Shown here one piece after another: positions 32,426 to 63,726 of a DNA stretch of 64,000 nt. This DNA is from Tubulanus polymorphus. Its lineage: Eukaryota; Animalia; Nemertea. Under the pieces are notes generated by a model that was given only the letters and a program-made list of their open reading frames with translations, had not been told where the DNA came from and ran no database searches. The stretch lies in assembly GCF_964204645.1 (NCBI RefSeq), contig NC_134033.1:12346655-12410654 (forward strand), written 5' to 3'. The translations under genes and the position numbers were made by a program. Every line of letters begins with the position of its first letter. Position 1 is the stretch's first letter.

Positions 32426-32571
32426 AGGAATTCCTGAAGATGACTATTAGGATATAGTCGAAACGTTGAAATAAACTACTATCTCCAAGTTTCATTTTCG
32501 GACTTTTTATTATCATTGTGGGATTCTCTCCTCATCGCGTCAACACGGATATAGTGTTCTACCAATCGTGA
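32426..32571 (+). mobile_element. 146-bp hammerhead-headed short retroelement-like insertion flanked by a 13-bp direct repeat
   Basis: TTACCAAACATTG at 32413-32425 and 32572-32584; related degenerate copy at 34292-34430 and inverted fragment at ~32607-32650. Confidence 0.7.
32431..32470 (+). ncRNA. Minimal type I hammerhead ribozyme with intact core
   Basis: TTC-CTGAAGA-T-GACTAT(TAGGAT)ATAGTC-GAAA-CG-TT-GAA: stem I UUC/GAA, 6-bp stem II, palindromic AACGUU stem III, GUU cleavage triplet, AATAAA immediately after. Confidence 0.75.
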
Positions 32572-33115: not shown

Positions 33116-33174
33116 CTAACGTTTTTCTTGTCTCTTTTCTTTTCATATTCACCTCCTCGACGCTGTAGGTAAGT
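33116..33174 (+). other. Candidate recursive splice site (ratchet point), AG|GT junction at 33168/33169
   Basis: Branch-point-like CTAAC (33116-33120), 46-nt AG-free pyrimidine-rich tract, TAG directly followed by consensus donor GTAAGT. Confidence 0.7.
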
Positions 33175-34291
33175 ACCGTTGTATTTTCTAATTACTTATT
33201 TTGTGTGTGTGAAACGAAGTCTCGGTCGGCGCACCAACCTTTGGATAAACCCTTTCAGAAAAGAGTTGGCCCTTTGTAAAATCTATGATATCATCGTTGC
33301 CATCGCAGCAACAAGTAAGATTCCGTGTGGATCGCTAAGTCTTAACGTACTACGTAAATCGATGATGTCATTGGGGGAAGTGGAATGCTTGATTTTTTAT
33401 CAGCTTCATTTTCATCGACAAACTTTATGAATCATCTCTCCTCGAAAATAAACTAATGAATATACGATTCGTCGCCGGGTTCTGGGAATATTCAAAACTG
33501 GAAAGATTATATTTTCATAGTAACGAGATATTTATCGATATTTAAGCGTCGTTTCGGCTCCACGCTGACGACGGATCGCGCGCTCCGAAATTTACGAAAC
33601 GCGGCACGAAGTCGCCTGGTAAAACTCGCGACTCGCGCGCGGTTACATCATAAATGCCGTATCACGGTTTAATATCATTTAACAGCGCTGTGTTAGTCGT
33701 CGATGGCCATCACCGAGCTTCATTAACCGGCGGTCATCGCGAATAAATGAATAGTAATCCGTATAGAACAGCGATCGTTCCGCGTCGCCTTAATCTGCGC
33801 GGATAAGAGTACTCGATGACGTTCATATTTTGCCACTCGAGGGACGCAGATGATATGCCGTGTACTGTCTTACATTATAAGCTCGCTGACGCTTACACAA
33901 ACTTGTTTGTGTTGTCGGCGAGGAACAATTCTCTTCTTTTTTAATGGTCGCCGTTTCTTCGTATCGCGTAGTAATGATATGGTGATTTTTTTAGGTCCCC
34001 GGCGTTGACTCATTTTTTCGCCTCATCGTTCGCGTATTATACTTGAGAATATTAAACGGCCGTGAATGAAAATGATTGTTTGCTTAGTATCATTCCGATA
34101 GTGAATGACCGACGATTTATGTGGACGAAAAATGGCGGAGAGATATTTGATTAAAATTGTGTATAAAATAGCGTCCCGAGACGAGAGTGTAGCAACTTTT
34201 CCAAGAACTATAATAATTGAGTATGTAGGAAATCTGATGATAGTAACGAAACAGTAACAGTAAGTCCAAAAATGGTTCCTCGAGCAAGTTA

Positions 34292-34430
34292 TTCCGGGAG
34301 ATGACTGTTAGAATATAGTCGAAACATCTAATGAACTATACACTAGTTCAAGGAAACATTTTCGGAATTAATTTTATCTTTTCGTTATCATTGTGGGATA
34401 CTCTACCAACGCGGCCGGTGTTTTTATCAA
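34292..34430 (+). mobile_element. Degenerate copy of the 32426-32571 hammerhead element
   Basis: ttccgggagatgactgttagaatatagtcgaaacatc...cattttcgga...ttatcattgtgggatactct; catalytic core mutated (CGGGAGA). Confidence 0.7.
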
Positions 34431-35942
34431 TGGTTAAAATAATTGAGCTTTAGTACCAGTCGACTCCTTCTAAGCCATCTAACCTCAATACGTAGTAGAC
34501 ACGGTTGGTCTTCTTGGGGTGAAGGAAAGGTGTAAAAAATCCCCATTTTACGTCTTATGCTTCACAGGCTCAGGTTGGAAGTCACGAAAATATTCCGTAT
34601 GGCCGAGACGTCATTTTGATGTTTCAAAAACATCGAAATTAATTATTTTCATTTATTTTACGGTTTTGGCCGTCGACTCTAAATATGACCTTGATCTTTC
34701 TTTAGTTAGTATTACGTGGGTAGGTGTGAATATAAAACTGCTTATTCAGACGTATATAATTAATTTAGCGATATAACAATTCGATTTACTTACATTCTGT
34801 AAGCGCTTTAGGGCAAACTCTATATCCGCCGAGACACTTCTTCGCATTCTACTTTACTCACACAAATTCAATAACAATTGTTTTGAATTAAAACGAATTC
34901 CTTTATCAAAAATAGATAGTTTTGATAAAGTATCGTTGCCGCCCGGGGCCTGTCTTTCCGTCAGACTTTTCTTATATGCGTATAAAGATTAGGTCGATTG
35001 ATTCTGTTTTGTTCGCGTAATAATTCGCTATTCAGTAGATACATTTTCATTTCAATGGGATCGGAAATTGATTAAATTATAGCTAATCGCATTTCCCTGG
35101 AGAAATGTACCGGCTCAGACTGTAAGCCTTCGGGCGATGCCTTTACGCTTTTGGTTTGGCCATGGACTAGCCACGATCGAGTCCACGGTTTGGTCATGGT
35201 CGCTAACACGTGAGTCCATGGGCCACGGTCTATGGACTGTAGGTGGTTAGCAAATATACCCAAAATTTTCAGTGTAGAAGTTAGAAATTGGTTTGGACCT
35301 GGAACACAAATCGCTTCGTTCTTGAGTCCATAGTTCCACCCGGACCCTGAAATTCCTTTTCGGTGGAGAGTCCGTGGTTTGGCCAAAATGTTCTTCTGAA
35401 GCGGATAATCCATTTGCTCTCCATTCAAGTCAAAAGGTACGGGTTGTTTCGCCTTCTTTGGTGAATTAGGGATTTCACCTTCGGATTTCTACCAGGGGAT
35501 TTTCACCGCTAATCGGTCATCTTTTATAGAATACAGGGCCGCATTTGAATTTCAGAGGATCCGAAAAAGGGCCTCTATTAGGACATAACAATGATATTTG
35601 CGCAAATACCACTTTTCCAAAATTTCTGCTAATACGGCCCTGAATGAGCCCTAACTGTTCAATCGAACGACAGAATTATTAATATTGAAAATGTTTGACA
35701 GAGAACTGCGCGGCAGCGGCGGCGGTGCCGGATTAGACCGCGCTCGTGTGAGAAACACGAAATTAAACGCGCATCTGTCATTTATTATCATCATACGAGA
35801 ACCAGATTATAAATAATCCCACAATGAAAATATCGCGGAGGATTGATGTCGACTGCGGCATGCGAGTACAAGACACCGACCCATATACTAGAATAGTAGA
35901 GTAAGCCTCGCCTGACTCGAGTAAACCGGGACCGGCATAATC

Positions 35943-36135
35943 GGTTAAGTGAACATCCGGGTTAGGTATATACGGGTCAAAAGATATATTAGGAAATTAG
36001 GAAAAGGTTTTGTTGTTGTCAGAGTTATAGTCAAAGGTCTGAGTTAAGTGAAAATTTGAGTTAGGTATATTCGCTTCGAAAAAATGGGTCAGGAAATTAG
36101 AAAAGGATTTTGTTGTTGTTAGAGTTGGTCTGAGG
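35943..36135. repeat. Imperfect ~100-bp tandem duplication
   Basis: gttaagtgaa...gttaggtatat...aggaaattag..aaagg.ttttgttgttgt.agagtt...ggtctgag occurs twice. Confidence 0.7.
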
Positions 36136-39100
36136 CTTCAGTTGGCCATGTGTGAGTAAGATGAGGATTACTTTATAACAAAACCGTTGGATTTTAAATT
36201 GGTTATGTATACATTTTCAAGATTCCTGGGTAGCTGGTGACGTACTAGCGGGACTCCGGGTGATTTCGTTGCTTCTATGAAAGAAAGGCTGCACTGTTCA
36301 CGTTTTATCTCGACCCCGTACTCGGCACGCGCCCACCTACCCAAAATTCTTACGTTCCTTATGCCGTTGTCTAAGACCGTCAGGAGGTGGAATTGTCTAG
36401 CGTCAAGCAATACAATTCATAAACGTTTGATAGTTACGACTGTGAGAAAAAGTAAAATCCTAGGCCTAATATTTCCCACGGATCGATTTCATGGCTATAC
36501 AATTCTTATTAGTGACATTTTAGTGACTTTTTTTCATTCTTAATATTGTAAAACTAAGTCCGTTGCTCGAATTCATTGATCTGCAGTTTAAACTTAAGTT
36601 AAACCAAACCACGCGTAACCTCCACATTCATCACTCGATTATTAATGTATTAACTATAAATCGTAATTTCATTTATCAATATTCTATTATCTACGATTCT
36701 ATCGGGTACAATTTTCCCGAAGCTTCTGTCGTTGAACGCGAGGGCAACGGGGATAAAACCGTTTGACATCCAGACGTGACTACGTGCGTGTCATTTACCC
36801 AGCTTGTCATCGAGAGCTATTGTGCGCTAGTGGATTCTTGACAATTTAACGGTCTATATTGTCAGAATGCTCTGCTTTGCGATCCGTAAAACTATCGTCC
36901 ACTGCCGAATAGAGCTAATTTTTCTACGCCTTTTGAGCCGATAAATGAAAGGTGTTTGACCCGGTCTCGATGTTGTGTACCGGTACATAGCAGTTTCAAT
37001 CCAGTGCAGCGGGTTTTACATAGCGGGTGTTAGCTTGTATCCCTGCGATATGCCACCTATTCTGAAACAGGCGCAAAACACTGAGCCAAACGTCTCAGTT
37101 GACGGCCATTTAACGGCCAATATTACGTATGTGACGTCCGTTCATTACACCAACTTTAGACGCTAACACGGTTTTCAAAAGAGAAATTCCTAAATAAGAA
37201 CATGGTTCCATTTATGTGAATGCTCGATAGTTTGACAATACATTCACAGACAACGATGTTTTTTAAAACCTTTTTTCTAAAGAGGAAGACATTAGTTATC
37301 TCATACTCTGTCCTTATCAACTGATTTATTTGAAAAGTTATTCATATCCTCTCGATAGAAGGTAAGCTTCCACTCACCCGCACACTATGCGGTCTTATTT
37401 CAGTGTGTGTATGAATTTTTTAAGTGGTTGCAAAAATGTCACTACAAACAGTCGCGGATAACTCGATACTGAATCAATAAATAGCGGATACCAGTGTGAG
37501 CACCGTTAATGAGTCGTTTGAAGCCCTTGTTTAGTAATTCTTTTTATCAGACCACCCACATCTCGGGGGTCAAGTTAGAGCGGGTTCGAGTCCCGATTTT
37601 AAATACGGTTTTTTACCCTGAGGAAAAGTTATTTTCCTTTAAGGTTTAAGCGAAAGCAGGCTCGAGTCCCGATTTGAAATGATTTATTACGATTGAGACG
37701 AAACGATTTGATGTCAGATGTGATTGAAACTGGAAATGGAATTTTTGTTTATGGCCCGTGACTTCTTCAACCTGTAGCAATTCACACGCATTGATTTGTC
37801 ACGTGCTTAGATTTGGCTCTGGCCTGGTCCGACGTTTTTCGGTCCAGCCAAATTTGGCCCGGGCCAAAAATGCTCATATTGTGACCGCGGCCATTTTGAC
37901 GATGTCTCTATAGGGATTTCACAGGCAGCTACGAATTCTGTGTACAAAAGCCCTCTTCATCTGTGTTATATTTTTCACACAATGTTGAGAACGTTTCACG
38001 GGAAATATTGACCTTTTTCTCCGTCGCTTTTAACGCGAATTCGAATGTTTACCCGCGGAAACGTCATTATATCCCCGACTTCCGTATAAACAAACCCGTC
38101 ATTGCCGGTCGACGGTGAAACCGGGTCAAAACTCTTCATTAAATGGAAATACGCAGCGAGAAAGATAACGACAATAAAAGCAATTGTAGCAGCGGCAGCA
38201 GCGTGTCACAATATTGTGCAAAAAATCAATGTTTCTCGAATGCTGCAAACTTGCTGAATATTCATTCAGGAAAAAAAATTATCCACCATCAAAATCGCCT
38301 TTCCACGGATTTCCGTTGTACGCAGCAACATTGTATCCGTTCAGCCTTTTCAAATCATGATTATAGAATTCAAACATTTCTCCAAGGAGAAAATGTATCC
38401 GTTTTTTGAACGCCCGTATTGCGGGATAATCCAGTTTAGAATGTTCAATGCTCGAGACGTTATTACTTAGCAGACAAAATATGAAACATAAAAACGTTAA
38501 GGTTTTCGTTTTTGAAAAGCGTACGTTCATTCGGCAGGCATCAAATCAAACTCAAATTCCACGGAAGTCTGCCACTGATGCAGGAATCGTTGGTTTGACT
38601 TGGCAAGCAGATCTTTAAAGGAAAATAACATTTGATATTATCTATGGCAATATTTCGGACTTGAGGTGCGTGAGAACGAATCTCGGTAAACTTAAACCGA
38701 GTACCACTGGCTAGTTCTGTTGGCTCGATTCCGGGTGAGTGCGCACACATTTCGTCACTAATTTCATCGTTTCACGTGAATCCACTCAACAAGTCACCCG
38801 ACCCTAAACTCAGCCCTCAAGCCGACTTATCTATGGCGCAAAATGAGGGGATTCAACACGTAAAACATCGATAAACCTGCACTGAAGTTAACACGCACTC
38901 AAAGTACGACACAATTAGCCACATTTGTGTAATATAACCGATGAAATCTGTGCGCCGGACGTGACGCGTATCTGGCTTCATTGTCAACAGATACGGGTAA
39001 TATCAGAACTGATTTGTCGATGTTGAAAAGGCTTTCGACTGCTGTCAATGAATGCATTGTGAAATCGTTGGTGTCATCATCTGTGACTGCGCGCTATCTG

Positions 39101-39417
39101 GAAGACACCAGATGTTTACTCACTATATAGTACTACGATATCGATTATTATTATCTGTAGCCGCTAATACAAGACACGTGGTTTTAACCTTTTGACGCCC
39201 GGGGACATTTTGACAGACACCGCGAGTAACAGATTGAAAGCTCTTGAAACGTGACTATGAATTCGTGGTTAACTTCGTTGATTCTTCGCAATTCAAAAAA
39301 TTAGATCAGCCACAACGTTCTGAAATCAATATCTCGGCTATTAACATTCATATTACACTGCATCTTAGCGATAGTGCATAGTGTTATCAGTGTATATAAG
39401 TGTAGATTAAGCCAACA

Positions 39418-39596
39418 TGGCCCCCTGGTATGACCATGGATCTAGATAGTGCCCCCTAGTGGACTAGGTGTATGAAGTGCCCCCTAGTGACGTGAGCGCG
39501 GATCTAACCAAGGCCCCTAAGTTACTTGCGTGATCGTAGATCAAAATGACGCGCCCCCTAGTGGTATGAGCTTACTGACGTCGTCTCTCTAGTAGT
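39418..39596. promoter_or_regulatory. Homotypic cluster of CTCF-consensus motifs in a degenerate tandem repeat
   Basis: GTGCCCCCTAGTGG (39449-39462), GTGCCCCCTAGTGA (39477-39490), GCGCCCCCTAGTGG (39551-39564) plus three weaker copies, all in the same orientation. Confidence 0.55.
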
Positions 39597-41314
39597 ATAT
39601 CTATCGATGGAGTCAAATCCGTCAATTTGTACGACCTGTCACGATAACGCTCAATGATAGTATTTCATTTCCACAGCCTGTAATCTACAGTGTACAGCGT
39701 GTACGTGCCACGACATACCTGCAGGTAGTTAACTACTCAGCTAACTGTAGTTATTATACAAATTTATCTTCATCACCCGTTCGATAGCAATCTCCTCTTT
39801 CACGTGTTTCCCCCCTCTCTCTCTCTCTCTCTCTGATGCGACCTCCTCCGATCTCTCGTCGCTAAATGGTGATTCGAGAAATGGCCTTTGTAGTCATTAT
39901 GGGAAGGGGTCGTTTTCTCGTCAGAAATCTCACTCTTCCTAGCGTAGAAACTCGTAGTTCGTGACACCAAAATCAGGGTTACTGCGTCCCATCCTCGAGA
40001 GAACGGTATTTACCGGACCTGATTTGGAAAGTCATGGCATCCGCTTAATTACGTGGACACACCGAGACAGTCACGTGCCCCTGTTGCAATATTCCCGTGC
40101 CCTTGAAAAACAACCGCAATTTTGGTGGCAATTTTTCCACCCGAAGTTCGCTACCAACACTTTGGCCTACGTTTCTCTACAATCCTAATTGAGAACTAGC
40201 ATCAAAATGCACTGACATTTTGACATTTTTAAGACCCCATTTTGGTTTCGTTCACGCAACACTCGCTGTATACCCTTTTCGTGCTCCTTTCAAGTCCCCC
40301 CTCCCGATGGTGTCAAATCTGTAACGACTGATCTTCGTAAGTTGATGGATTGGCTGCAGAACCTAAATAGCAGCTAGATAACGCATAGGTTTTTACGACG
40401 TCAAAAAAATTGTCGTAAAGCTTTGATAAGCATCGACTTTGCAACTGTAAGATATACATATAACAATAACAGGCAAATCACTTGGTCGTAAGTAATGGAT
40501 GTGAATTGAAAGTGAAATGAAAACCGCGGCTGCCTCCAATAAACCATCATTTAAAACACGCCTGATTTATTATTGTACGGGCACATCTCGTAAACGATGT
40601 CGGGAGACCGCGCGCGAGTCGTCTGACCGGGTCCAATAACAGTCTGAACCTAATCAGGCGGCGGTATCCGTCTGGACCATCGGGCGAGCGCGTTCCATTG
40701 AAGATTTATGTGGCGCGCGCGCGCGTATAATAGACAAAATCTGTGTTGTCGTAACCGTTGGTAACAGCGCGATGTATTGTGTCCATCCTGTGAACGAGAC
40801 GTCGCGAATTTCCGGTTTCTTCCGGTCATAAGTTTTAGTTTTATCTCGGAGCTGCGCGAGACGCTGTAAACTGTGTCGTCGTTATTTAATTAGTATGGAT
40901 GTTCGCCTCCTGCGCTGAGTAATACACGCGCGAGGTTGTGTATGAAACCGTTACCTGTATAAGATACGGCGATGAGGTGTAAAACAATCACGAATATTGC
41001 TATAGAATAATCTATATAGGAACTCGTGTTGAACTGGACTCAGAATCCCACAATTTTTGGAACTGGTATTACACATGAACAACCACCTGGAAATCATGAT
41101 GTCTTGATAGCCACTTTTCAAAGAAACAGCTTTAGAGTCGAAGTGTGACGTAACCACGACATCAAGCTCTATAACCACTCACCAAATGGATTCGTTCTAT
41201 TTTAGTTTTACTGTAGTTAGCTACGCTTGCTTTCTACGTACGAGACCCGGGTTCGATCCCCTGTGAGTGCGCGCTAAGTCACTAACACTTCATTAATCGT
41301 TAGGCTGTATTTAG

Positions 41315-41640
41315 AGTCAAATCATTTCACAATCAAACCCATGATTGTGGAACTGAGTTTGGAGTCACGACTGTGAAATAGATTTCAGAATCCATAAACA
41401 CAAATGCAACTTTGGTTCAGTGTCAAATCGAACCCAGAGCCCAGAAAGCTGAGCCCAGAGTCCAAAAATGACCATGCACAACTTTGGAACTGGGTTCAGA
41501 GCCAAATCAAAGTCGTGTTTACCTTGGTAATGAGCCGACATTGCTCTAGCACCAACTGTGTGGAACTGAAACCAGAGTGAACTTAAAACCACATGTTCAG
41601 AGTCGATATAAACTCATAACAGGAACTCGGTCCACACTGA
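41315..41640. repeat. Degraded array related to the 39-bp minisatellite unit (similar decay at ~27290-27480)
   Basis: Recurring ctgtggaactgg.ttcagagtcaaat...aaccc motifs. Confidence 0.55.
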
Positions 41641-42320
41641 AATCAAAAACATTACTTTGCAATGATCGATGATCAATGATCAATGATTCCTTGACCACTA
41701 ATCGGTCAAACAGTAATAAACGTCTTGAAAAGCAACACTTGACCGACGGAAGTGACGAATACCGTTAACAGTCTAAAGTGCAATTCGCAATTAAATCTTT
41801 CAGCTTGATTGCTTAGCAATTCATCTCTCTTTCACGTGAAGGAACGAACGATGACGCGCGACAAATAGTACACTTCTTTTCCACGATGATTTTCTAAGGT
41901 CGTGATTCGCAGTTGATATAAAAGCTATTCGATGTATTTAAACAGAAAGGTCTTCAGATTGAGCCGTCTGAGCTGGTTCATCTACTAAACCCACAGACGT
42001 CAAAGCCGAGTGGCTATCAAGTGTCAAATATCGTCGCCTTTTCTATCGACGGGCGCCAACAGCCACTTCAACGCGTAATTGCCTGTGAGCAACCTGAATA
42101 TTGAAATACCCCCGGATTCATGATTGATTCGATTTGGACGGTGCAAATCAGCGAATAATGTTTGTTTATTCGGTTTCCTTTTTTATTCGAAATAAATCTC
42201 CGAGACATTGGCTGTGACAGGGGAAGAAACCAGACGAATTAAACATTAGGACAACGACCGCATTCGCCGAGAATTATTGAGCGATTTTTAAGAGTGAACA
42301 GTTCGGTTAGAATCTCGATA

Positions 42321-42493
42321 AAGACATCTCTACAAGGCACGGGAATAAATAAATGGAATAAATACTGGCTAGATGATATCGAGAAGTGGACTGGGTTTGA
42401 TGCAAAGACCTTTCACCTGGCACAGAGCTGAAACGAGTGGGCCCGTGTTAAAGCAGTTGATATAGTGTCATGGCTTATCTGAATCTGAATCTA
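42321..42493 (+). mobile_element. 3' remnant of an RTE-clade non-LTR retrotransposon
   Basis: Translates KTSLQGT ... YWLDDIEKWTGFDAKTFHLAQS*NEW, matching the RTE ORF C-terminal pattern (KTILQGT...W.D.I..WTG...LAQDR..W); ends in short tandem tail (TCTGAA)n. Confidence 0.7.
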
Positions 42494-43536
42494 TAGGAAA
42501 AGACATCGAACATAATAAATATCTGTGAGGACAAAGTTCATTTGATCATTTTTGTCCTTGAAAACTACTCTGTCAGACTGCAAACTTTTCATCTTTTGCT
42601 GAAATTATTTCTGACGTTCACATTTTACTCGGAAAACTCGGATGCGGTTTGAACGGTCGACTCTGACTATAGTATAGAAACAAATGCAATACCGAGCAAA
42701 CCGTATCGCAATAATATTCATTCAACGATAGGAAAACTTTCCAGTAGTAAGAGAAAGACGTGTAAATGCGTTATCCGTTCATAAATAACAATAACACGTT
42801 AAGACACACGTTAAGACTCACGCAGTTTTTAGCACGAATCGTTTCGAACAGATTTCATTCGTTGTAAGTAATTAGCACTTACACTCACTCGGTAGTTATA
42901 CCGTCGAATAGTAAACTAGATAATACCGTTAGTTTGTAATCGGTTATAACGCGAACAAATTGTTACCTAATGTCTGAGATGTATAGCTCTGCTCGCATCG
43001 CTTACTGTTTGACTCATAGATCACAGTATATAGAATACTTTAGAAGTATACATGAAGTTGTATGGCTTGAGATGGGTGGCGGATCGACTACAAAGGGAGG
43101 AAGGGAGATACGTTTAAAGAGGGGGGGGGGGGTTATGTGGGTATGGAAAGCGAGAAGTAAAAAGGGAGGCACAGAGAGGTGGTGACAGAGTTTCTTGGCC
43201 GAAGGTCCTTCTCTGGTCTCTCCCCCATTGGGAAAAAACCAACATGGAACCCGCTTATAATGTCCTGCGTGGCCCTTAGCGGTTTGGAGGTGTTAAATAA
43301 TGAAAAAATAAAAAGATATGGAGACAGAGTAGTAAGGGGAGAGAGAGAGATGGAGAGGATAGGTGGGTTGAGGGTGCGAGGGAAGGGAAATGAGGAAACG
43401 TCTGGCCCCGATACTGATGACGAAGTGCACATCAAAATGTCCTTATCAAAATTAGTCAACTATGAGATAAGTGTTATGAAATATATTCAATTTACAAAAT
43501 AAACGCCAAGAATTCACAAGAATGTTATTTTTGTTA

Positions 43537-43660
43537 CGCCAATATTGATGACGTACTGCACATCGAGTCACGCAGAAACCCTTATATAACGCATACTATA
43601 AACATTAACGGTTTTTGCGGCGTCAAAAAAATCACTGTTGTTCCCACGACGTATTGAGAA
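43537..43660. repeat. Dispersed repeat family D copy
   Basis: Homologous to 18495-18645. Confidence 0.65.
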
Positions 43661-46600: not shown

Positions 46601-47861
46601 GTCTCCAATACTTTTAAATGTGTATCCGAGGAGGTTGAAATATGATACGATCTTATTTGTACATCGTACGACCACGATATACAAAGATACGAAGTCGTTA
46701 CTTCTGACAATTAATAGCTACACCTATCTGTCGATGTATCTGCGCAGTCTCTTTGAGAATACGATACCTGAATGGTTAATGACACACCCTTTAACGAGAC
46801 ATTTCTACACGTCAAATATAGCGATTACATGCTGAAAGTTGTCGGCACTGTATACGCGGACACGCGGACACATGTAATTATCTCATTTTGGAGTCCACGC
46901 CTCAGATTGAAATATGAATATTAAAAGGTTCGCATCTTGAAAATACGAAGTTGTAATAAGTCGCTCAGTCCCGACTAGACGATAATAAGAAAGGTTTTTT
47001 TTCAATAGTTTGATTTGCTTGATGAACTTGAAATGAGATTGAAAATGGAACGGAATTATTCTAGGGTTGATGGTATGACACTTTTCATTTTTCTTCTAAC
47101 CATCTATTATTGTAATGCCTATTTCGATACCACAGCATTTGTGTCGAGGGAAATGAAGCAATTGAAGAAAGTTTACTCCTTCCTTACTGTATAAGTAATA
47201 ATTCATTATTATTTACTCATGAAAGTGTCAACTAATATGTTGTTGTCTTGAATATGAAAGTAATTCGAGAAATAACTTGTTTTAAATTCGGAAAATTGGG
47301 ATTTGGTAAAACCTTGGGTTAAATAAGAGCTTTTTATCTGGGGTAATTTTACGTAGGTGGTTAAGTGGATTTTCACTGCTAACCAAGTATTGGACCAACT
47401 TCGAATAGATTCACACCAGTCAACGCATAACTGTTGGAAAAATATTGATATCGATACGGTACATTTCTAAATTCGATAACCACATCGCTACCCAGCGAAA
47501 AATGCAGTCGATGCCCGGGTCGCGCGAGGATCGCTGTAAAGGTTTTATAGATTGTGTATTCATTTATTACTATAGAAACGGGTACGTTATATTGTCTTTA
47601 TTTAATTATATCGTCTGTGCTCGTGCAGTTAACGAGAAATATAAAGTGACGTCGACGCTGATGATAGATTGACTCCGCGGCTGGTGATGGTACTCGTTGA
47701 CTATTGTATTATATATCACCGGAGCGCTGTGTATTTGTGTTTTAGCAGCGATTGAGAATATGTCTTGCGCGTAATCGCGTGCGCCGCTGCAGATTCGAAT
47801 GCATTTATTTCAATTCGTCGAAAACGATAAATCTGAAATTCTAGAACCCAGTTGCACGTAT

Positions 47862-47941
47862 GCCCAACGTATGCTAGGAAACACGGAAACATGAGACAGA
47901 AACATGTTTACGAGCGTTTCCCTGTGTCGTGTCGCGCGTTG
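47862..47941. mobile_element. Internally deleted copy of MITE family E (also fragment at ~16784-16832)
   Basis: gcccaacg...ggaaacacggaa.catg...catgttt.cgagcgtttccctgtgtcgtgt shared with 59950-60132. Confidence 0.7.
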
Positions 47942-50015
47942 ATTATTCGAGTTGGACACTTGAACTTGAACTTGAACTTAAATTTTATTGCTCCATATAA
48001 TATACAAGTTACATAGGAAATGACATGCAATAAAATATTAACATCAAAACACAGGAAAAACAGTACAAAAGTGGACATACGTTTATAATGGATAACACGG
48101 GGATAGAAAATATTTGCAATTTCCCTGCTAATTAGTATTTTCGCAATATTCTTTCATTTCTCAGGTATAGCCTTGTGTTCAAGGTTCGAACGTTTGAAAT
48201 TAGGTTTTTGGCTCGAAAATGAAATAAAATTGTTCTCTTCAATAGATAAACGTGTTAGTTAATGTACTCTTTCAATTCAATTTTGAAAACGATTAAGTGC
48301 GTGCCTACTAGAAATCTTTGACGGAACATCTCGAGATAGATTGACGAAGAACTCGCGCAATTCGAATTTTTATATGATAGAATTTATTATACTGAAACCA
48401 GGACGTTTTGGCGTATTCGACTTTAAAAACATCGAGACAAATTGATTAGATATTGAATTTGATTAGATAGCTTTTTTTTAGAAATTGATTAGATAGTTCT
48501 ACAACGATAGATAAAATGAAGCATGGAATCCTAATGAAGTGTTATGCACAACACGCTCCTATACCACACTATCATTGTTCAGCATCTTAGTGTCACGGTT
48601 TAAGTACGTTCTTATCGCCATTCTTCGACGCTATTTCGAGTTGTTATTCGAACAACGAAATCCATTTATCTCCGTCGAAACTCTCAAAGAACTAGAGAAG
48701 TTTAAGCGCTCCTATGTTACGCAATGGCGGCCGATCGTCTGGTCGGGTTACCAGGGAAATGGGCGTTCATTGTTGACGGACGACCACCTGCGGTTATTAT
48801 GAATCAAAATGTTACACTTTCAAGAGTGAATATTAATGCTACTTCGATGTTTGTTTTCGTTGCGTGGGGCGTTGGTTGTTTGATTGGATTACGCAACATA
48901 AAGGTAGGAGGTCCGGCGTAGAAAGTCTCAAATAGTTGTGAATTCACGCGTGGAGTAAGTAGTGGTATGAATGCATTGGATATCAATGGGCGTAGCGAAA
49001 GAGGCCCGAAGTCGAAGACCCCTCCTGGTAACACAACTATATCCCTAATTATGCGACAAGAGAGCTTACACCTAGCGCAATAAATCGCACACTTTTGATC
49101 GAATTACTCCGGGTATTTTCTCCGTGTTGTAGCACTAGGACACGTGGACGCAGGCCATATCCCCAACAGGCAAAATCGAGCCTTTAGCAGAAAATATCAA
49201 AAGCTACGCCGAACCCAAAGCCCAGCGCTGGTTGGGTTTATAGGCCTAGGCCTTTTTACTTCACCGGTGATATGATCTCAATCGAAGAAAATACAACTTT
49301 CGGAAGGATGAGTGTCAAATATACGGATTGACTATCGATGTTCTGATAAAAAGGACAGCCTTAATGGGAAGGTGCGGGGTCCCGAATCACCGAGACCCCC
49401 CATCCCGAGATCTGTAGGCCTACATACGATATATAGACTAGTTCTCCTATGCACGGACTTGAAGGACAACGTCGCAGTTTTCCGCGAAAACAGCACAACA
49501 AACTAGCATTTACATAGTCATTAATCACTGGCCATTAATATTAATGTTTACATCCGTTTCGTGTCTCCAGCCGCCGCCGTGTCCGTCGTTTAGCGCCCGT
49601 CACAGCCAACTGTGGCAAGTGAGCACCCACGCAAATCGATTTCCCGATGAATATTATACGAAAGGACGATGACGCCTAATCGACCTTTATTTTTAACATT
49701 GGCTCAGATTAATTTCGAAACGAACTATATTCACCGAGTCACCATTTAGATATTTTCGGAGCAATCCTCTTTTTACTTCACAAGGAGACGAATCTCAAAG
49801 TCGTAGGGTAAAGTCTGTAGGAATTCGGGAATTGGTTATTTAGTTAGTAGTCACGTTTGACAGGACAAAGCTCACAGGCTAGATAGAGGAGGATTAGGGA
49901 ATGACAGTAGGATTTTCTGCCGTCTGGGCAGAAAATCGTTAAACAGAAAATTGATTGCCAAAATTCCATATGATATATGCTACTTGTAACTCACATGATC
50001 CTAAACAACAAATGA

Positions 50016-50066
50016 TTAAGCTATGGTAAAAAGATGTGTCTTAATTCGAGATTTAAAAGCATCTTT
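50016..50066 (-). mobile_element. 3' remnant of an L2/CR1-type LINE ORF2
   Basis: Minus strand translates KDAFKSRIKTHLFTIA*, the typical FKSxLKTHLF terminus. Confidence 0.6.
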
Positions 50067-50108
50067 ATCGTGTCCTGGGACTACGTTCAAATTGCTTTGT
50101 AATCCCAG

Positions 50109-50241
50109 GGACCGGTTGCATAGTCATGGCTTAGACTTAAGACCAGTCTAAGACCAACTTAGTTCTAAAGCCAATCTAACAACTTGAGACCAGTCTTAAG
50201 ATTTAAGACCACTTTTGGACTTAAGTTTGTGCAACTGGCCC
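50109..50241. mobile_element. MITE family A copy
   Basis: Near-identical to 18336-18473; flanks CAG / CTG. Confidence 0.85.
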
Positions 50242-53200: not shown

Positions 53201-54138
53201 TCAACTCTCAGAAAACAAGTTTTCTTACTTTACCGCGAATTAAACCTATAAACAACATTATATGTATATACAGTCATATGATATAGACCCGAGCGCCCTG
53301 CTATACCACCCTGGCTTTACCAACGTACGTTCCATGATCAATTCTACAACCCTAAACCACACCTTCAGACATTTCACGAATTTATGAAGAAGTCTTGGCG
53401 ATCCTTAGGACGTTTATGTGGTCCATGTATCGGTGAATTTCTCGAGAATCTATGGAATGGAGGTCCCAAACTCGGGTGAAGCCCTGATGATCAAACACGT
53501 CGCGAGGAAGAATAACGATAAAGCATTGGTAGCAGATTGATACCTCCAAAGTGGCAAATCTTTCGAAAGTCTTGGATTTGAGATTAACGTAGCAGTCTCC
53601 CGTTGTCTTCTAGGCATGGAGCACCCACCTTATTCTGTACGTAAAAATGTTCTAGCCGCTCACGCCAGTAGTTGTACAGTTAGATCTACTCTTGTAGCTC
53701 TTGCATAACTCTGGGAGAAAGTTCCCCGATATTCTACTTAGACTCGTGGCTGTTTTTCTATTGTTTAAGAGGCGTCGGTTTTAACGGCTTTTAAGACGAT
53801 ATTTTCACGGTTTTTGCTGTAGATTCGATTTCATTCTGTTGGCGCGCTTCGCTTTATCCGAGGCATAAACACCGGCAACATCGATACTTTTACATATAAA
53901 CTTATCAGTCTTAGTTTTGTTTATCGTAGTTGAGCCGCGGTAAGACGCCTGAAGAATGCCAGCTCTCTACCGGCCCGGAATTCTTGTTAAATGGTTCGTC
54001 CTCATTGAACTCGACTCCGATGGAAATTTACGTAATTGAGAAATAATTAAAGGTTACAGTGCCTACTTGCGTGATGGCGGTTTACTATAAACTAGACCGA
54101 ACGAGAGCCTAAAATAGCTTGCGACCCGTTTCTCTTAA

Positions 54139-54245
54139 GCTGTAAGCGAGCCTGGAACCAGTAATCTCTGTAGGGATGAGTGTGCCCAACCAGCAGCGCT
54201 GTAAGCGAGCCTGGAACCAGCAATCTCTGTAGGGATGAGTGCGCC
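54139..54245. repeat. Tandem duplication, 59-bp period
   Basis: gctgtaagcgagcctggaaccag(t/c)aatctctgtagggatgagtg(t/c)gcc twice. Confidence 0.9.
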
Positions 54246-55239
54246 GCTATTAATGACACAAATATCCCCGGCTCGATAAACTATCAGGCGGAATTATCGA
54301 TGAGGAAAATTGTTGATTTTATCGCGACTCGACGGAAGCTCGTACCGTCAATTGTTCGCTAATAATGGATATTTTCCGGCTCATTTCACCGGCTAAACTT
54401 TGTTATTACTCTCTAGCGATGATGCGCGCTCGTCTCGGGCGAATCGTTGGACTGGTTAGCGCGCGTGACCTCATCGGCGTAGCGGTTGCGCCGAAGGCCA
54501 AGGTCGTGCGCCAAGTCGGCGTCCGCGAATTAATTTGATTGGTTGCGTAACGCGCGACGCCTGATGTTTAGATAAGAAACTTTTTGATTTGTGATCGCGG
54601 ATCGTCGTCGGCGCTGGTGGCTGGAAAAACTCTGATCGAACCGGAAAAAGTTTGGAATCGATTTCACGAATTCGGCTGGCTGTCCTGGTCTCTGCTCTGT
54701 CACCTTTGAGAAGGGAGGGTAGATGCCGCTGCTATGCCCTTCGGCTCCGATCGAAATCTAGTTTCTGAATATCTAGGAAATACGATCGGACAAAAGTCCC
54801 AGATTTGTTGTTTTTTCCTCAGTGTATCAATGGTCTATCGGATAATTATCGTTTCATTTTGATCAGTGAGTTCACAACCTCGGGTTATACGTTATGTAAT
54901 GATATTGATGTTACTGTAATTGGTTTGCTGCGCTGTTCCAGTTTCCACTCCTCCAGCTATTATTACTAGTACGATTAGTTATGACTTTTCTGATCCCGAC
55001 ATTTCTCATGATATTCGCGTCGTCGTCATCGCCATCCAGTTACGTACTCGTCTTCGTATATTAATGACGACCTTTCGTGAAATTTAGAGAAAATAAATTT
55101 TGAACTTACAAAATGCAAACAAAGAACAGAGTACGTGATGACTGAGTAATGTGAGGAATGAAACATCCCCAGCTCGCCGAGTGCACGGGGCTGGATAACT
55201 GAAGTCTGGTCTCCATATGTAAGATACGTAAGCTTTCGA

Positions 55240-56240
55240 ACTGCGATGGTCTTAGCCTACGCCATGACTATGGAGCTGAGGCCAGGAGTGGGGTCGCGTA
55301 GTGGCCACACACTCCTCGGGGCTCAATTGCACTTAAAGCGGTATTGCAAGACTGGTCTCAAGTTAAAGCCATGACTGTGCAACTGACTTCTAGGAGCAGT
55401 ATATCTCGTGACGTCTTCGAGTCAACCCTTCGTTTGGACAGGGTAAGGTACGAGCTGCCTGACGACGAATAACGGCGTGCAGAATGGCATTATACTCGTT
55501 GATTGTTCGGCTGCGGCGATTATTCTAAAAATATTTGAAAAATGTTCGACCATATGGGATGCGGGTAGCTATCTCTATACAAACCGGTACATCCAATAAA
55601 CGCGAAGCAGATTTAGATAAGGCCGAGGGCGTTTGTGTCGTGTCGTTTTGAATAAATTAAATATTTTCTCTCCAAATAGGATTAGAATCCGGCGATTTCG
55701 AGTGGCTTTGTGTCGGGCATGAAATCAATTAACTTCTCAAAACTGTTCCGTTTTTCTGTCGAGTGAATGAAGACTTTTACAATACGAGGTGAAATGATTA
55801 TTTGAACAGCACCTATAATAAAACTCGAATCATTGACCAGATGTTGAATTATTTACAATGCGTTCATGATATTTGGTTCGCTTTTTCGATAACGTACGCG
55901 AATAAGTCTTATCTAGTCATAGTCTTATATAGATCCTAATACGCTTAGACGTGACTTATATATTTACATTGATTGTGCATCTGTCGTGACTTTACTTAAA
56001 ATCTTCAATCTTAAGATTGTTAGATTGGTTATTGAATTTAGATACGATTAAATCTAAATCTTTTTGGACCCGTCTTAGATATGAGCTTTGACTTAAAAAC
56101 TGGCCACTGGTTTTGGGGGCTTGGGTGCAGTCCACCTCTATAGCCATTCTAACTATACTACATGCTATATCATTCTAACTATAAACTAGACCAGTCTTAC
56201 GTTTTGAGAGCATTTTTATTTAAATCTAAGCAACTGGGCC
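55240..56240. mobile_element. Several highly degraded MITE family A fragments
   Basis: Motifs gccatgactatgga, aagactggtctcaagttaaagccatgactgtgcaactg, ttgttagattggttat, tatagccattctaac, agaccagtctta, gcaactgggcc. Confidence 0.5.
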
Positions 56241-57834
56241 TCGATTTTTCGATACTTGTAACCCGTGTTTCGAATCGTTAGTTGTTCAGTTCAGTCCAAT
56301 GTGTCCAATTTAACGGCACAACAATGCTTGTTTACATAACGCGAATGGATCCAGTCGGGACGTCTGCAAAAAACTAATAATTCGTGACCGATTGAAAAGT
56401 TGGCGAAGAATTCAAAACAAACTTCGTCATCGAGCCGAACGACTGGCAAAACAAACTCGCAATTATCTGTGGACGCGGATAACGGCTAAAACACACGTAA
56501 CCGGAAACTCGGTAACGAATAGAACTCGGGGTAAATGCAATTAACGATACGCGGAAAAAGCAAATTCACAAATTGATTGCCCAACAACAAATTGAACAAC
56601 GGCCGCGTATCGCAAATTTCATTATCCTCGAACGGACACAATGTTCCATTATAGAAAAGTTGCGATAATTTTTTCGGTTAGTTTTCAGTTCCCGTCGACA
56701 ACGATCAGACGATGCTAACCGAAAAATGCCGGCGTAGAAAAAAAAACGAAATTGATTTCGGTAAACAACGCCGACACGGGTTGGATCGTGGGAAATCTGT
56801 TTATTTTGGTAATTAGCGCGCTGGTAATTTTTTGTGTGAAGTGCGCCATCAAGGCTCGCGGGAAACGCGGAACGTGCTGCGAGTCGAGGCTCGATGATCG
56901 ATATTTACCGAACCCCGTGTCAAAAACATAATTGTAATCATGTTTACATACTCTTCGTAACCCGGAAATTAAATGTTATTTTTTTGTCATCCATTGGAAG
57001 GTTTGTTTCTGGTCGAGTGATGTTTTCGGAGGACGATGACGCGTTTTTTGGGAAGTGTCCAAGTTTACGCCATCGGGATTGTTGGGTTCGAATCCCGGTG
57101 ACCGCTGATTTTTTTGTGGTCGAAGCTTCTTACTCTTTGTGTCCTTTTTATCGGAAATATTATGCTTATCATAATGCTTATCCCCAAAGTGACGTCCAGT
57201 ACGTTATCGGATAAGGAAGTTCCAACTTCCGTGCGTGTGTTTCTTAGGTTCGAAAAAGTGGAGGAGTCAAAAAATATCGGACCTGCATCTTACGAAGATA
57301 TTGATGAAAATAAAAAGAAAAAGAAATAAACAAACAAAAACAGCAGCAAAAAGTTGAAGAAAGTTAGAATATAAAATTAGGACAAAGGTTTACCGAAGGT
57401 GAACAGGTCTAGGTCAAATCTCTAGTCCGGATATTCCAGAATTCGATATAAACGAAAACGAAATTCATACGACAAACTCTTAAATCTTTATATGAAATCC
57501 GCGATGTGAGCAAATAATATGAATAAATCTGACTGGGTTTGAGAAGGAAATGGTGTTAATGAAAAGCGAGGGAAAAAAGAACACGTTTTTCCTGGATATT
57601 CCGTCGAAACCGGGAGAAATGCAGATGGCATTTTCGATCGGGCAAATATGGACGCGGTTTGAGCCGAGTTTCCGGTGTAACCCGACACGAGTTTTGCTAA
57701 ACAATAATAACGGCAGAATCAATTGTGTAAACAGGTCCCGTTAAATTAAAACCGTCTCCGCATCAAAAGCGGCCGAAAAATCCAATTAGAACTAAACAGT
57801 CGATATTACACGGGGAAAAACAAATATCCGACGC

Positions 57835-58410
57835 GGAGAGGGAGAGAGTGAGAGAGTGAGAGGGTGCTGGATCAGGGAGAGAGAGAGAGAGAGAGTAAAG
57901 AGAGGCCGTGAAGGGAGAAGAGAGTGGGAGAGAGAGAGAGAGCAAGGGGTGAGAAACAGAGGCGGGGAGAAAGAGCCGATAATACGTAGATAAAAGAGGC
58001 GAGGAGAGAGTGAAGAATGGAGGAAGAGAATGGAAGACAGGAAAATGAGAGTGAAAGAAAGTAAGAGAATGGAGAGAAAGATGAATGACGGAGAGTTGTG
58101 AAGAGTCGGAGTCAAAACGGTAAAAGGGAGGGAATGGGAATGTGAAGAGGGAGAGATTGAGAAAGGGAAAGAGAGAGAGGGGGATAGGGAGGGGAGCGAG
58201 AGGGGAGTGAAGAGGGACATTGCTGGATGAGGAAGAGAGAGAGAGAGGACAGGGAGAGTGTTGGATGATGGAGAGAGTGAGAACGAGAGGGAGAATGCTG
58301 GATGAGGGAGAGAGAGAGGGGAGAGTGAGAGGGAGAGTGTTGGATGAGGAAGAAAGTGAGAGTGAGAGGGAAATTGCTGGATGAGGAAGTGAGGGGGAGA
58401 GAGAGTGAGT
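57835..58410. repeat. Polypurine (GA-rich) low-complexity tract
   Basis: ~575 bp of mostly G/A on the + strand with recurring tgctggatgaggRagagagagag units. Confidence 0.9.
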
Positions 58411-59466
58411 GCAGGGTTCTCTTTGTATTGATGTATACGATTCAAGTCATATAAAGTATAATCATGAAAAACGATGTTCGCAAATCTAATAATCAACGCA
58501 GAAAACATAGAGTACGAGACAACTATCAATCAATATCTGAAATCAATACGGTATCAATCATGTTTGAACCGCTCCACTGTGATATCGTGGTTGACAGATA
58601 GATCCTCGTAAATATCAGCTGAATGCTCGCATCGCCGGGATTGGCCAACGAGATGCGTAGTGTTTTAATCTGAGGAAAAATGATTACAGAACCGGCTATC
58701 AAAATTCGTCAAACATTAATATCAACGACAACCAGCTTTACGCATCAACTGTATTTGAATATATTTGTTCTCTTTAGATTTATAAGATTTGACTCTGTTT
58801 AATACACGTGTTATTTGAAATTCGAAGTCGATGCCGATACGGGTATATATATATATATATATTCGAGAAATCATTTTTACTGGCCAAATTTAACTTTAAC
58901 TATAAAGGTCAATCGATCCCTAAATTGATATCTCATATCAATCTAAGAACGGTCTGGAAATGTTGACGATGAATTACACGTATACATAAATGACGTATAT
59001 ACTATTAAGGATAAACAAAGTTAATTTGCATTTGAGTAAACCGATGAATTGATTTGAATTGATCGGCAACCCATCAAGCCCCGGTGTGTAGATGACGCGT
59101 AGTGCGCGTTCTCAAAACACATGGAAATTCATCAAAGCGTCACGAAAATGCCAAAATTCACAATTGTTGTTGTAACGGTTTTTACGGTGTCAAAAATCAC
59201 TGTTAAGCTTTGGACGATGACAGCGCCATCTGGATCACTGTATCACGCCTTATTTACATAGGAAAGAAAGTTCTGCCGCCATTGTGCGTATGGTCTCGCG
59301 CGTAAAGGTTATATATTGGTAAATGACGCCAACGCATTTTTTCTGTCGAACGCCGCAGACAAATTAGTTCCATAACGAGCGACTGCAAGCTAGCCGCCAA
59401 TATCTTAGACAGCCGGACAAAGAAACTGTTGATATGTTCTGGCGGGCGCGCGGGCTCTACAGACTG

Positions 59467-59500
59467 AATGATGATGATGATGATGATGAAGATGATGATG
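59467..59500. repeat. (ATG)n trinucleotide microsatellite
   Basis: Direct reading. Confidence 0.9.
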
Positions 59501-59949
59501 AATGTCCTGATGACAAGAGCTCCTATATACTCCGCCGTAAGAAAAAGAGGCAATGAAAAAAAGAGAAAACGCTCTCTTCAATCGCGGTTTGGTATTCATT
59601 CGAATCGGGTATCATTACCGTCGTGGCAAGTGAGGATCCGCCATACTGCGACTTCCTGCGAAATTCCCTTCTATATTTCAATTAGGATCGAATCAATTTT
59701 CTTTTAGGTGATCAATTCTATTGCAATAGACGAATTAATGCGATGTATATTTGAGATGCTCGTCTGATCATAATTTTGAATCAGGATAAAAAACCGTTCA
59801 GATTTAAACGATGAACCTCTTGAAAATTAACTGATTTCGACAACTCAAACCGATTCGGTGTGCCGCTGGTATATCATCGAAACGCGATTGAAGCCGCGTT
59901 AAACGAAGTCTAATAAAGCGCATATTTGTTCAACTAGCTCGGAACTTAA

Positions 59950-60132
59950 AGCCCAACGCACACGACGCAAGGAAACACGGAATCATGTTTCCGAGCGTTT
60001 CCCTGTGTCGTGTGCTTTTTTACGAGAATCGAGAATCGAGAAACATAGTTACGGGAAACAAGATTAAACATGTTTAATTCCGTATTTCCGCGTTTCCCTG
60101 ATTCACTGTTTCGTGTACGTAGGCGTTGGGCT
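59950..60132. mobile_element. MITE family E, full-length-looking copy
   Basis: TIR AGCCCAACGC / GCGTTGGGCT; internal ggaaaca/tgtttcc inverted motifs; related copies at 47862 and 16784. Confidence 0.7.
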
Positions 60133-60284
60133 CTAGAGCCTCACAAAAAAAACCTTTCCAAGTCCACAACCGTAAGTCGAGTATAAGTAACGCAAGTTTT
60201 ATTGGTGATTACGTTGGGTGAGTGAGCAGGGATGCGAGGGTGTTGAATAAGCGCCTCTAGAGACGACCGAATGCGAGAAAAGTA

Positions 60285-60570
60285 TCAACCGCTGAGTGAC
60301 CGGTCGCGTCAACCGCTGAGTGACCGGTCGGGTCAACCGCTGAGTGACCAGTATGGTCAACCACTGAGTGACCAGTCGGGTCAACCACTGAGTGACCGGT
60401 CGGGTCAACCACAGAGTGACCGGTCGGGTCAACCACTGAGTGGCCGGTCGCGTCAACCACAGAGTGACCGGTCGCGTCAACCACTGAGTGACCGGTCGGG
60501 TCAACCACTGAGTGGCCGGTCGCGTCAACCACAGAGTGACCGGTCGCGTCAACCACTGAGTGACCGGTCG
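60285..60570. repeat. 24-bp minisatellite, ~12 copies
   Basis: Unit TCAACC(A/G)C(T/A)GAGTG(A/G)CCGGTCG(C/G)G, head-to-tail with no spacers. Confidence 0.97.
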
Positions 60571-61276
60571 GAACAAAATGAAGGCATTACAATCCTTATA
60601 TAGAACCTGCACTACATATTATTATATCATGACTTCATTTTCTAATACTGTCTTTGTCTGTTATTGGGGGCGTCCATTTTTTTATACGATATTCATAGCG
60701 TCAAACAATCAGTCCATTATGACACTCATCATATACACGCCGAAAGTCTCCCGCGCACACGTCTTCGTAACTCACGCCTTGCGAGGCAGGCGTGTGCGCG
60801 AGCGTGTGCGACTACGCGCTGATTGGCGACATTTGCTCTTTTTCAGCACTCCGTCAAACAAAAGATCTCATTCAGCTCGAAATTCGCCCCGGTTCCTGCC
60901 GCCGGTGCTGATCTATACGTGTATCGCGCGCATCCATATTTAATGTAGCAGTTTGACACGTGTTGTTAATATTTTCGAAACAATGGTTTTTCTCAGTCGA
61001 AAAAGAGCGGCATTGTTTTTTTTTTTTAATATTCAGCCGTGAGCATTTTTGTCAATGTTACACATACTAGGACGTATAGCAGATGTGACCAGTGTTTTGT
61101 GTTGATGTTTCTATTAATTCTAAACAGTACTGAGGCTTCTGTGTGTATTGATATTATTGCTGTACGTATTTGTCACAGCACTGTAAAAAAGTAATGTTCC
61201 GCCATTATACAAAATGTTTTTCATTTATTCTAAATTGGGTTTTACAAGTTCAAGTTTCGACTGACTTGACCTAGAT

Positions 61277-61484
61277 CCACATTTGTGTGGGTTTGATTTG
61301 ACTCTGGACCCAGTTCCACATTTGTATGGGTTTAATTTGACTCTGGACCCAGTTCCACACAGTTGTGTGGGTTTAATTCGACTCTGGATACAGTTCCACA
61401 GTTGTGTAGGTGTCACTTGACTCTGGATACAGTTCCACACTTGTGTGGATTTAATTTGACTCGGGACCCAGTTCCACAATTGTG
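61277..61484. repeat. 39-bp minisatellite, ~5 copies
   Basis: Unit ccaca(t/g)ttgtgtgggtttaatttgactctggacccagtt. Confidence 0.93.
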
Positions 61485-63663
61485 AGCATAATATGACTTC
61501 CGGTATTTGAGTCTAGAGTTTAACAGTGGTGAGGGGTTTTTAAACTTCACCCGTCCCGGACCCATAGATCTGGTAGTTTGATTATTGTTAGTTTGATTTG
61601 ACTCTCTTTCACTCATTATCGACACTGACTCTTGTGAATTCAATTCTAAAATCAGTTCGTTAATTCACGCAGTTCTTCCACTATCCACCCTTGTGAATTC
61701 GATCTTAACGAGACGGAACTAGTTCATTTAATTCGAATAAAAGATTCCATCTCTAAAATCCACGAGTCTGACTGAGTATATTTTCATCGGGAAAGTATCT
61801 CAAGTTTCATCGTATATCATGTCTCAGCTATAGAGCAGATATTAGTCGTGATAATCCGGCAGTTTTTCACAAAGCACAACAGGTTTTCTCACTTTGTTGA
61901 TACCTTTTGCGGAAATTTGGATGAAAAATGAGGCAGGCAACCGCGCAACGTGCGCATGGTAACCGGCGAAATGTATGCATCCTCACGACCGGCCTCTCGC
62001 CGCTGGCTTGACAACCGTCGCTACCGCAGATTCTAAATTCGAAATTTATCGCGTTTGAACTGAAGTGAGAATTGAAAAAGAAAAAGTTCATTGAAATTGA
62101 TTGCCGCAAAAAAACATTACGGTGTAATCTATTATGTTTTAGGCGTGGTTTTTCGAGATAAGAAACGAGAATTGAATCCGGAAAAAATTAATGATGATGA
62201 TGATACGCGCGCCTGTGGTCTAACGATTTATTGTGCTTTCATTGCCGGCCGAACTCGAAGGGAAGCGGTATGCCAACCCGAGATACAGTTCGATAGTGTC
62301 ATGAGTTAAGATTTGATTCGTTAAAGTAGCCGCTGAACTGCTGTATCAAAGCATAATTGTAACGGTATTTTCATTGGCGTCAAAAATGAAAATGCTCATC
62401 GCAAGCGACTAGGTTTGAATTGGTATATATAGCTGATGAGACAGTAGGTCTCGGCGCTAACCGGTCTATCGGTCGGTCTGTGAATATAGTCGGGGGGGGG
62501 GGGATTTTTGTATCAATGTCGAGTCTGTCGTCAACAGTTTATTTTCGTCGCGCAAAAACGACGTATTAATCCTACAGAAATGATTGATTATACTCGGTCG
62601 CCAGATTATCCCTCGCGTGCCACAGGTGGTTCGTCGCTCCTCGCCTGCCGCAGTCAAGTTACGTACGATATCGTCGGTATTTCGCACGCGTTACGGCCTT
62701 AGTTCCTGTAGTTTGATTTGTCACCTAGAGCGAGCCTATATCCTACAATAAAATACACGATGACAATGCTATCACCATCCCAATGAGTAAAACATCGGTA
62801 AAGGCAACCAAAATCCTCGCTTTTTGGTTTATGACCACTTTTCAAAGTCGGCTGATACATGCATGAAATGCTAAACAATGCTTTGCTACCATAAATAGGT
62901 TATAATGCAGATAGTGCGCCGAATATCAGATTGTTGGACATCAAAGTGCCCGTTTAGGATGTGACACGTTCTTCAGAGTAAGCCCCTGGGTCCATCCCTA
63001 ATTCGATATCTTTCCCTCTTATATCCACTTCTTAATCTGCTGGCAACTTTCCATGCAGTAACTTATCAAACCCCATAACAGCGTCTTCCAAACAATGAGA
63101 AAATCTCACGCATGATCGAACACGGTTTTTTGTTACGATAAGGCTTCGTATTTTCTTCACGCGCAGAATATTTCCACATTTCCGTCGTCGTTTCGTCGTG
63201 CACTTTTTTAGTTTTATTAACGTTCGCGGATGGTCGCGTTTTCGTTCTCGAGAACGCGCATCAACACAAAATCTTCCGCACCAGATTTCATCGTCGAATC
63301 TATAGCGCTGCTGTTTCTCGTCATTATTCGCGTTTTCTATCGCTCTCTGCCTCATTGAACACCGTAAACAGTTCGGCGATATTTCACGAGATTACACGCG
63401 ATTTGTCTCTATCTCACTCTTTTATTGTCGCTCTTAATTGTTTTCGATGGAATTAAGTAATATTTTAAAGATGCATTCCACCGCTAAGGTTCCTCGAGTA
63501 AAGTTGGTTAATGGTTGGTTGTAAAGTTGGTTATAAAATATCATTGATACTGTGGTATTTTCCGACGGTCCGACTAACAATCAGTAACTGGCTACAAATA
63601 TCTGAATGTTGCTTCGTAGTTTGTTCCTAATCTCAGATTTTGAATATAAACTTTCATCATATT

Positions 63664-63726
63664 GCTGATAGATTTCTTTTTTTTCTCATTTCATATTTGG
63701 TTTTTCTGTCGCCTTATCAGGTAAGT
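63664..63726 (+). other. Candidate recursive splice site (ratchet point), AG|GT junction at 63720/63721
   Basis: Branch-like GCTGAT (63664-63669), ~47-nt AG-free U-rich tract, CAG directly followed by GTAAGT. Confidence 0.7.

Follow-up and report, generated by a model that had tools for sequence, protein, structure and literature searches.

How an intron of 68.8 kb is removed is the question raised by a 64,000-nucleotide stretch of DNA from the ribbon worm Tubulanus polymorphus (contig NC_134033.1, positions 12,346,655 to 12,410,654 of the forward strand; the whole stretch is called the window below, and its coordinates are counted from its first letter). From 12211 to its end at 64000, the window belongs on the + strand to the first intron of a predicted anosmin-1-like gene, and at two places within this intron a sequence resembling a splice acceptor is fused directly to a perfect splice donor. 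Junctions of this form recall the zero-nucleotide-exon ratchet points that were reportedly described in Drosophila by Hatton in 1998 and Burnette in 2005. We consider the chances about even that the two junctions are recursive splice sites at zero-length exons (ratchet points), at which intron 1 would be removed in successive steps.

Two fused acceptor–donor junctions in a giant first intron

Both junctions lie on the + strand, the first reading ...CTGTAG/GTAAGT at 33168/9 (site 1; the slash marks the junction) and the second ...TATCAG/GTAAGT at 63720/1 (site 2). The acceptor module of site 1 (33107–33168) consists of an AG-free zone of 60 nucleotides (nt; 33107–33166), with 81% pyrimidine over positions −45 to −4, followed by TAG. 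It holds two branch-like motifs, CTAAC at 33116–33120 (A at 33119) and TTCAT at 33142–33146 (A at 33145). The module of site 2 (63672–63720) is composed of a 47-nt AG-free zone, also 81% pyrimidine, followed by CAG; a TTCAT at 63690–63694 (A at 63693) lies within it, and a branch-like CTGAT at 63665–63669 (A at 63668) lies just 5′ of it. The donor GTAAGT follows immediately in each case, at 33169–33174 and at 63721–63726, and the 9-mer TTTCATATT is found in both acceptor modules (33141–33149 and 63689–63697). The preliminary description of this locus had seen at each site a branch-like motif, an AG-free pyrimidine tract and a fused GTAAGT, and all three are present. Both sites conform to (Y)nNYAG/GTAAGT, the acceptor consensus fused to the donor consensus of a zero-length exon, and a further site that had been proposed at 48164/5 does not. 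The 341-nt regions around sites 1 and 2 have no second match in the genome, nor can the two be aligned with each other. Being single-copy and mutually non-homologous, the two sites were not spread by a repeat, and a repeat origin is ruled out.

The host gene was recognised exon by exon. Exon 1 (12052–12210, +) encodes a signal peptide and the first C-x3-C-L of a Cys box, contains the ATG, and ends in phase 0 with the donor CAT/GTGAGT (12210/1). Exon 2 (L003:7052-7129, +) has 26 codons, phase 0-0, with ...C-x5-C-x2, the acceptor ...TTTCTTTACAG and a GTAAGT donor, and exon 3 (L006:9350-9409, +) has 20 codons, phase 0, with C-x3-C-x9-C-x3-C and a GTAAGA donor. Exons 2 and 3 between them bring back the Cys spacing of anosmin, C-x5-C-x2-C-x3-C-x9-C-x3-C, and the spacing of the box as a whole is recovered over exons 1 to 4. 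The Pfam WAP model, searched against the genome, gave one WAP exon 126 kb downstream of exon 1 on the same strand (L009:4016-4250, +, 46.5 bits). Among its closest relatives in a library of 1.8 billion proteins are some of 600–760 residues that carry a Cys_box, a WAP and four fn3 domains and that NCBI names anosmin-1. Searching by tblastn with six anosmin-1 proteins located the fn3 exons in the 11 kb that follow the WAP exon, and a profile of seven anosmin N-termini was matched by the peptides of exons 1 to 4 at the consecutive positions 2–18, 19–40, 40–61 and 66–90. Pfam Cys_box gave no match on the genome or on the single small exons, because these exons are too short. A word search with amphioxus anosmin confirmed the family name, with no protein of this species among its best 120. 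The predicted product has the anosmin-1 order of a signal peptide, a Cys box, one WAP domain and then fn3 repeats, and by this architecture the host, a neural and developmental gene, is anosmin-1-like.

Exon 2 begins after a further 17,051 nt past the end of the window, so that intron 1 measures 68,841 nt in total. It is the longest of the first three introns; introns 2 and 3 measure 32,220 and 24,606 nt, and neither has such sites. Sites 1 and 2 lie on the sense strand of intron 1 and divide it into segments of 20,958, 30,552 and 17,331 nt. On the exon-by-exon gene model they are located inside one long intron and coincide with no normal exon end. Two earlier expectations, that no coding exons would lie between the sites and that they would fall in a giant intron of a developmental or neural gene, are thereby borne out. 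The true acceptors of exons 2 to 4 have AG-free zones of 63–87 nt with 57–64% pyrimidine, and the zones at the candidate sites (60 and 47 nt) resemble them in form, with a higher pyrimidine content. The CAT at the 3′ end of exon 1 is a poor exonic half of a donor. Because of this, a donor regenerated at the end of exon 1 would need perfect +1 to +6 positions, and both sites have a perfect GTAAGT.

Sites so built and so placed may be used by the spliceosome. Recursive removal of intron 1 would proceed as follows. During transcription, the exon 1 donor CAT/GTGAGT would be spliced to the acceptor at 33168 with release of a 20,958-nt lariat, and the new junction, now CAT/GTAAGT, would act as the donor for the acceptor at 63720, releasing a 30,552-nt lariat. 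The regenerated CAT/GTAAGT would then be spliced to exon 2 across the remaining 17,331 nt, and the mature exon 1–exon 2 junction would carry no trace of the intermediates.

The preliminary description had added a weaker third site almost midway between the other two (CAG/GTATAG at 48164/5, within 48140–48170, +) and, with it, a removal of the intron in steps of about 15 kb. Under a relaxed context filter (an AG-free zone of at least 20 nt and at least 70% pyrimidine over −23 to −4), 20 AG/GT dinucleotide pairs on the + strand and 10 on the − strand pass between exon 1 and the WAP exon. Roughly half of these match the donor consensus as well as or better than 48164/5. We reject this site as a ratchet point, since it is indistinguishable from the background of AG/GT, and the version with steps of about 15 kb falls with it.

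Weighing recursive splicing against other explanations

Several points weigh against the use of sites 1 and 2 in recursive splicing. Their pyrimidine tracts are broken by purines near the AG. The TT at −5/−6 that is found in 99.5% of fly ratchet points (bioRxiv 10.1101/006163), and is thus near-universal there, is absent from both; site 1 has C,T and site 2 has T,A at positions −6/−5. The gene model was built exon by exon from motif and profile logic, not from transcripts. A run search returned three public sequencing runs from one study, none recorded as RNA, and all three behave as DNA. Compared over 30200–36200, run X1 has an even depth of about 30, while runs X2 and X3 yield short contigs, with depths of about 25 and 50, that break at shared places, as would be expected of DNA from another, heterozygous individual. 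The joints and loose ends listed for these runs include none at 33168/9, where X2 has no coverage. In the genome as a whole, no excess of the motif was seen; three versions of the motif gave 13, 69 and 71 matches vs 28, 91 and 67 in a reversed control. Use of sites 1 and 2 is accordingly a prediction from sequence.

The alternative that survives best, though we consider it unlikely, is that the two sites are poison or decoy pseudo-exons. Their acceptors would be real and occasionally used, and inclusion of a cassette such as 33169–33314 would bring in a stop, while the fused GTAAGT would serve to remove or suppress the cassette. Their role would then be quality control or regulation rather than an obligatory step. 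This is the logic of the recursive-splice (RS) exons of vertebrates, in which a recursive site acts by way of an RS exon bounded by a further donor downstream; recursive splicing of this type was reportedly described by Sibley et al. in 2015. Site 1 is compatible with such an arrangement, as a GTAAGA donor (CAA/GTAAGA at 33315) lies 146 nt after it and would bound a possible RS exon of 146 nt (33169–33314, +) that contains an in-frame stop. Like the vertebrate examples, sites 1 and 2 are also AG/GT junctions far inside a neural gene's first long intron, and the strength of their motifs is the same under either explanation. Site 2 differs from the vertebrate examples and speaks against pseudo-exons, as it has no good donor within 400 nt, only a GTAATT at +215.

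A coincidence is, in our judgment, slightly less probable again. Two unrelated pyrimidine-rich stretches in a T-rich intron would merely happen to end in AG/GTAAGT, and neither would be used. The octamer by itself accords with this, since AGGTAAGT occurs at chance level, twice on the + strand and never on the − strand vs about 1.2 copies expected per strand from base composition. The flat genome-wide counts given above accord with it as well, and scanning a whole genome will pick up rare coincidences. When the window was extended by 200 kb downstream, giving 264 kb that were analysed on both strands, eight copies of AGGTAAGT were found, and only those at sites 1 and 2 have a pyrimidine-rich, AG-free sequence upstream. 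The other six have 40–57% pyrimidine and AG-free zones of 0–22 nt. Conversely, only 14 of the 27,439 AGs in this sequence lie in a strong acceptor context, taken as at least 45 nt free of AG with a pyrimidine content of 80% or more, thresholds that were chosen after the sites had been seen. GTAAGT follows directly after 2 of the 14, vs about 0.004 expected. Another of the 14 (148,332 in the extended sequence) falls where a match to an anosmin fn3 exon begins, so that the context picks out at least one probable true acceptor.

By our own estimate, chance would produce about 2–3 such sites in the whole genome of 268 Mb, and the number of same-strand pairs within 69 kb expected genome-wide is below 1e-3. 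Both sites are, in addition, sense-oriented in the largest intron of the gene. The union of AGGTAAGT with a strong acceptor context at sites 1 and 2 is not due to chance. The same cannot be said of the shared 9-mer TTTCATATT, which is not significant for two T-rich tracts of 46 nt (p ~0.25, own estimate). TTTCATAT was found 10–32 nt before AGGTAAGT 22 times vs 3 in the reversed control; composition would give about 7 or more, and many of the matches have no pyrimidine tract. TTTCATATT is hence unsupported as a specific element.

A coding exon end or an alternative coding first exon at either site is ruled out, because the open frames that end there do not exceed 30 codons and contain no ATG, and because, in the phase that joining exon 1 to exon 2 demands, site 1 closes with the stop TAG. 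That GTAAGT is the donor of an unannotated non-coding alternative first exon, or of some other sense transcript, with the tract as exon sequence, agrees with the sequence as far as non-coding exons go, and a TATAAA box followed about 90 nt later by TTA/GTGAGT (20843–20935, +), which the preliminary description had named as another upstream exon and which is itself a possible non-coding alternative start inside intron 1, would allow other starts; but AG-free zones of 47–60 nt with 81% pyrimidine and branch-like motifs are the signature of acceptors, as in the host gene's own, and we regard this explanation as improbable, the least probable of the three.

Ratchet points in other animals and candidate sites elsewhere in this genome

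Fly ratchet points are juxtaposed acceptors and donors in long introns, with a prominent pyrimidine tract and strong conservation (bioRxiv 10.1101/006163; PMC8605326; PMC2773006), and the recursive segments between them have a mean length of 18 kb and a range of 2.6–63.6 kb (Duff et al. 2015, bioRxiv 10.1101/006163). The candidate sites share with them the juxtaposed (Y)n-YAG/GTAAGT, the prominent pyrimidine tract, a location in sense orientation within a very long intron whose host gene is neural or developmental, and the presence of several sites in one intron. The segments of 21.0, 30.6 and 17.3 kb lie within the fly range and around its mean. Apart from the missing TT, they differ from fly sites in the interruption of the tract close to the AG and in the probable position of the branch, 24–50 nt upstream inside a long AG-free zone. 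They also differ in that their host lies outside the arthropods and vertebrates.

To our knowledge, recursive splicing has been experimentally shown only in flies and vertebrates, and in the literature searched we found no paper on recursive splicing in molluscs, annelids or nemerteans. We put forward tentatively, and at somewhat less than even chances, the wider view that a spiralian, the ribbon worm, uses recursive splicing at zero-length exons and that this mechanism is older than arthropods and vertebrates, has an acceptor architecture of its own and is found in a few giant neural introns. This architecture would comprise a distal branch point and an AG-free zone of 45–80 nt, and TT at −5/−6 would not be needed. 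If the sites are used, the mechanism would extend to the third great branch of the bilaterians. Such an extension would argue that recursive splicing is an ancestral solution to very long introns and not one particular to a lineage, and would allow universal features, such as the perfect GTAAGT and the long AG-free tract, to be told from the fly-specific TT at −5/−6. In the meantime, sites 1 and 2 provide a prediction with exact coordinates and a well-founded candidate in a phylum in which recursive splicing is not known to have been described.

The fly motif is enriched about 20-fold on the sense strand of long introns (PMC2773006). A large fly-like class of ratchet points is not evident from the raw counts in the present genome, and a class numbering only a few dozen sites could not be seen among the approximately 35 chance matches. 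No genome-wide excess would be expected in this compact genome of 268 Mb if recursive splicing were confined to a small number of giant introns in neural genes. Of 95 distinct matches, 59 were kept after evident copies of repeat families had been set aside by eye. Among these 59, five same-strand pairs lie within 100 kb of each other, at three loci, vs 0.64 expected, and there is one opposite-strand pair vs 0.64 expected. The clustering of unique sites on one strand at these three loci is weak (p ~0.03, and weaker without the present locus).

The two sites at the second locus lie 22.7 kb apart, both on the − strand (G000:C2:23707395-23707411 and 23730135-23730151; L023, L024). Their flanks are unrelated, and they have in common the 22-nt junction motif TTTCTCATTTTAG/GTAAGT. 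Their AG-free zones measure 78 and 50 nt, and with TTTTAG they do have the fly TT at −5/−6. At the third locus, three pyrimidine-tract YAG/GTAAGT sites, all on the − strand, are found within 99 kb (G000:C12:2161816, 2232246 and 2260638; L022). The middle one has a 75-nt AG-free zone with 74% pyrimidine, and the cluster may mark another giant intron. The sites at both loci resemble sites 1 and 2 in their unique sequence, long AG-free pyrimidine tract, perfect GTAAGT and co-directional spacing of 22–70 kb.

Matches to the motif also arise from repeats. One dispersed family has ...TTTTCCCTGATTTCCAG/GTAAGT at its end, in many cases preceded by a poly-T and an A-rich stretch, with examples at G000:C3:10027959(-), C4:6161826(-), C7:16128608(-) and C9:14057471(-). 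It supplies a branch point, an acceptor and a donor together, and it inflates the genome-wide counts of the motif. A ready-made ...CCCTGATTTCCAG/GTAAGT end is likewise carried by a repeat family of this genome.

Other features of intron 1 and its surroundings

Several further elements are located inside intron 1. A match to tRNA on the − strand (19352–19443, 92 nt, 58 bits with Rfam), for which ARAGORN names no anticodon, may be an intron-bearing tRNA or a tRNA-derived repeat. Tandem repeats are represented by an (AT)92 microsatellite at 28305–28488, a 24-nt minisatellite with 12 copies at 60285–60571, and an array of 39/80-nt units at 61268–61484. The segment 32411–32611 is a very high-copy element, with a summed contig depth of 258,038 in a DNA run vs about 26 in its flanks, and it coincides with a hammerhead retrozyme-like insertion noted in the preliminary description.

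Upstream of the anosmin-1-like gene, the first 8.8 kb of the window contain a receptor gene (649–8814, +) in three large open frames. Its domains are CUB, C-type lectin, five LDLa, LRR and a rhodopsin-type 7TM, an LGR-type, GRL101-like build. A short frame at 9485–9580 (+), upstream of exon 1 and with no ATG, reads ...KCVCHCISLHH... and resembles the anosmin N-terminal C-x3-C-L-S-L-H; chance may account for it, or it may be left over from a first exon that was duplicated. On the other side of the anosmin gene, about 100 kb downstream and on the + strand, there is an open frame of 3,682 codons with internal repeats (G000:C9:12592099-12603144; L020-L021).

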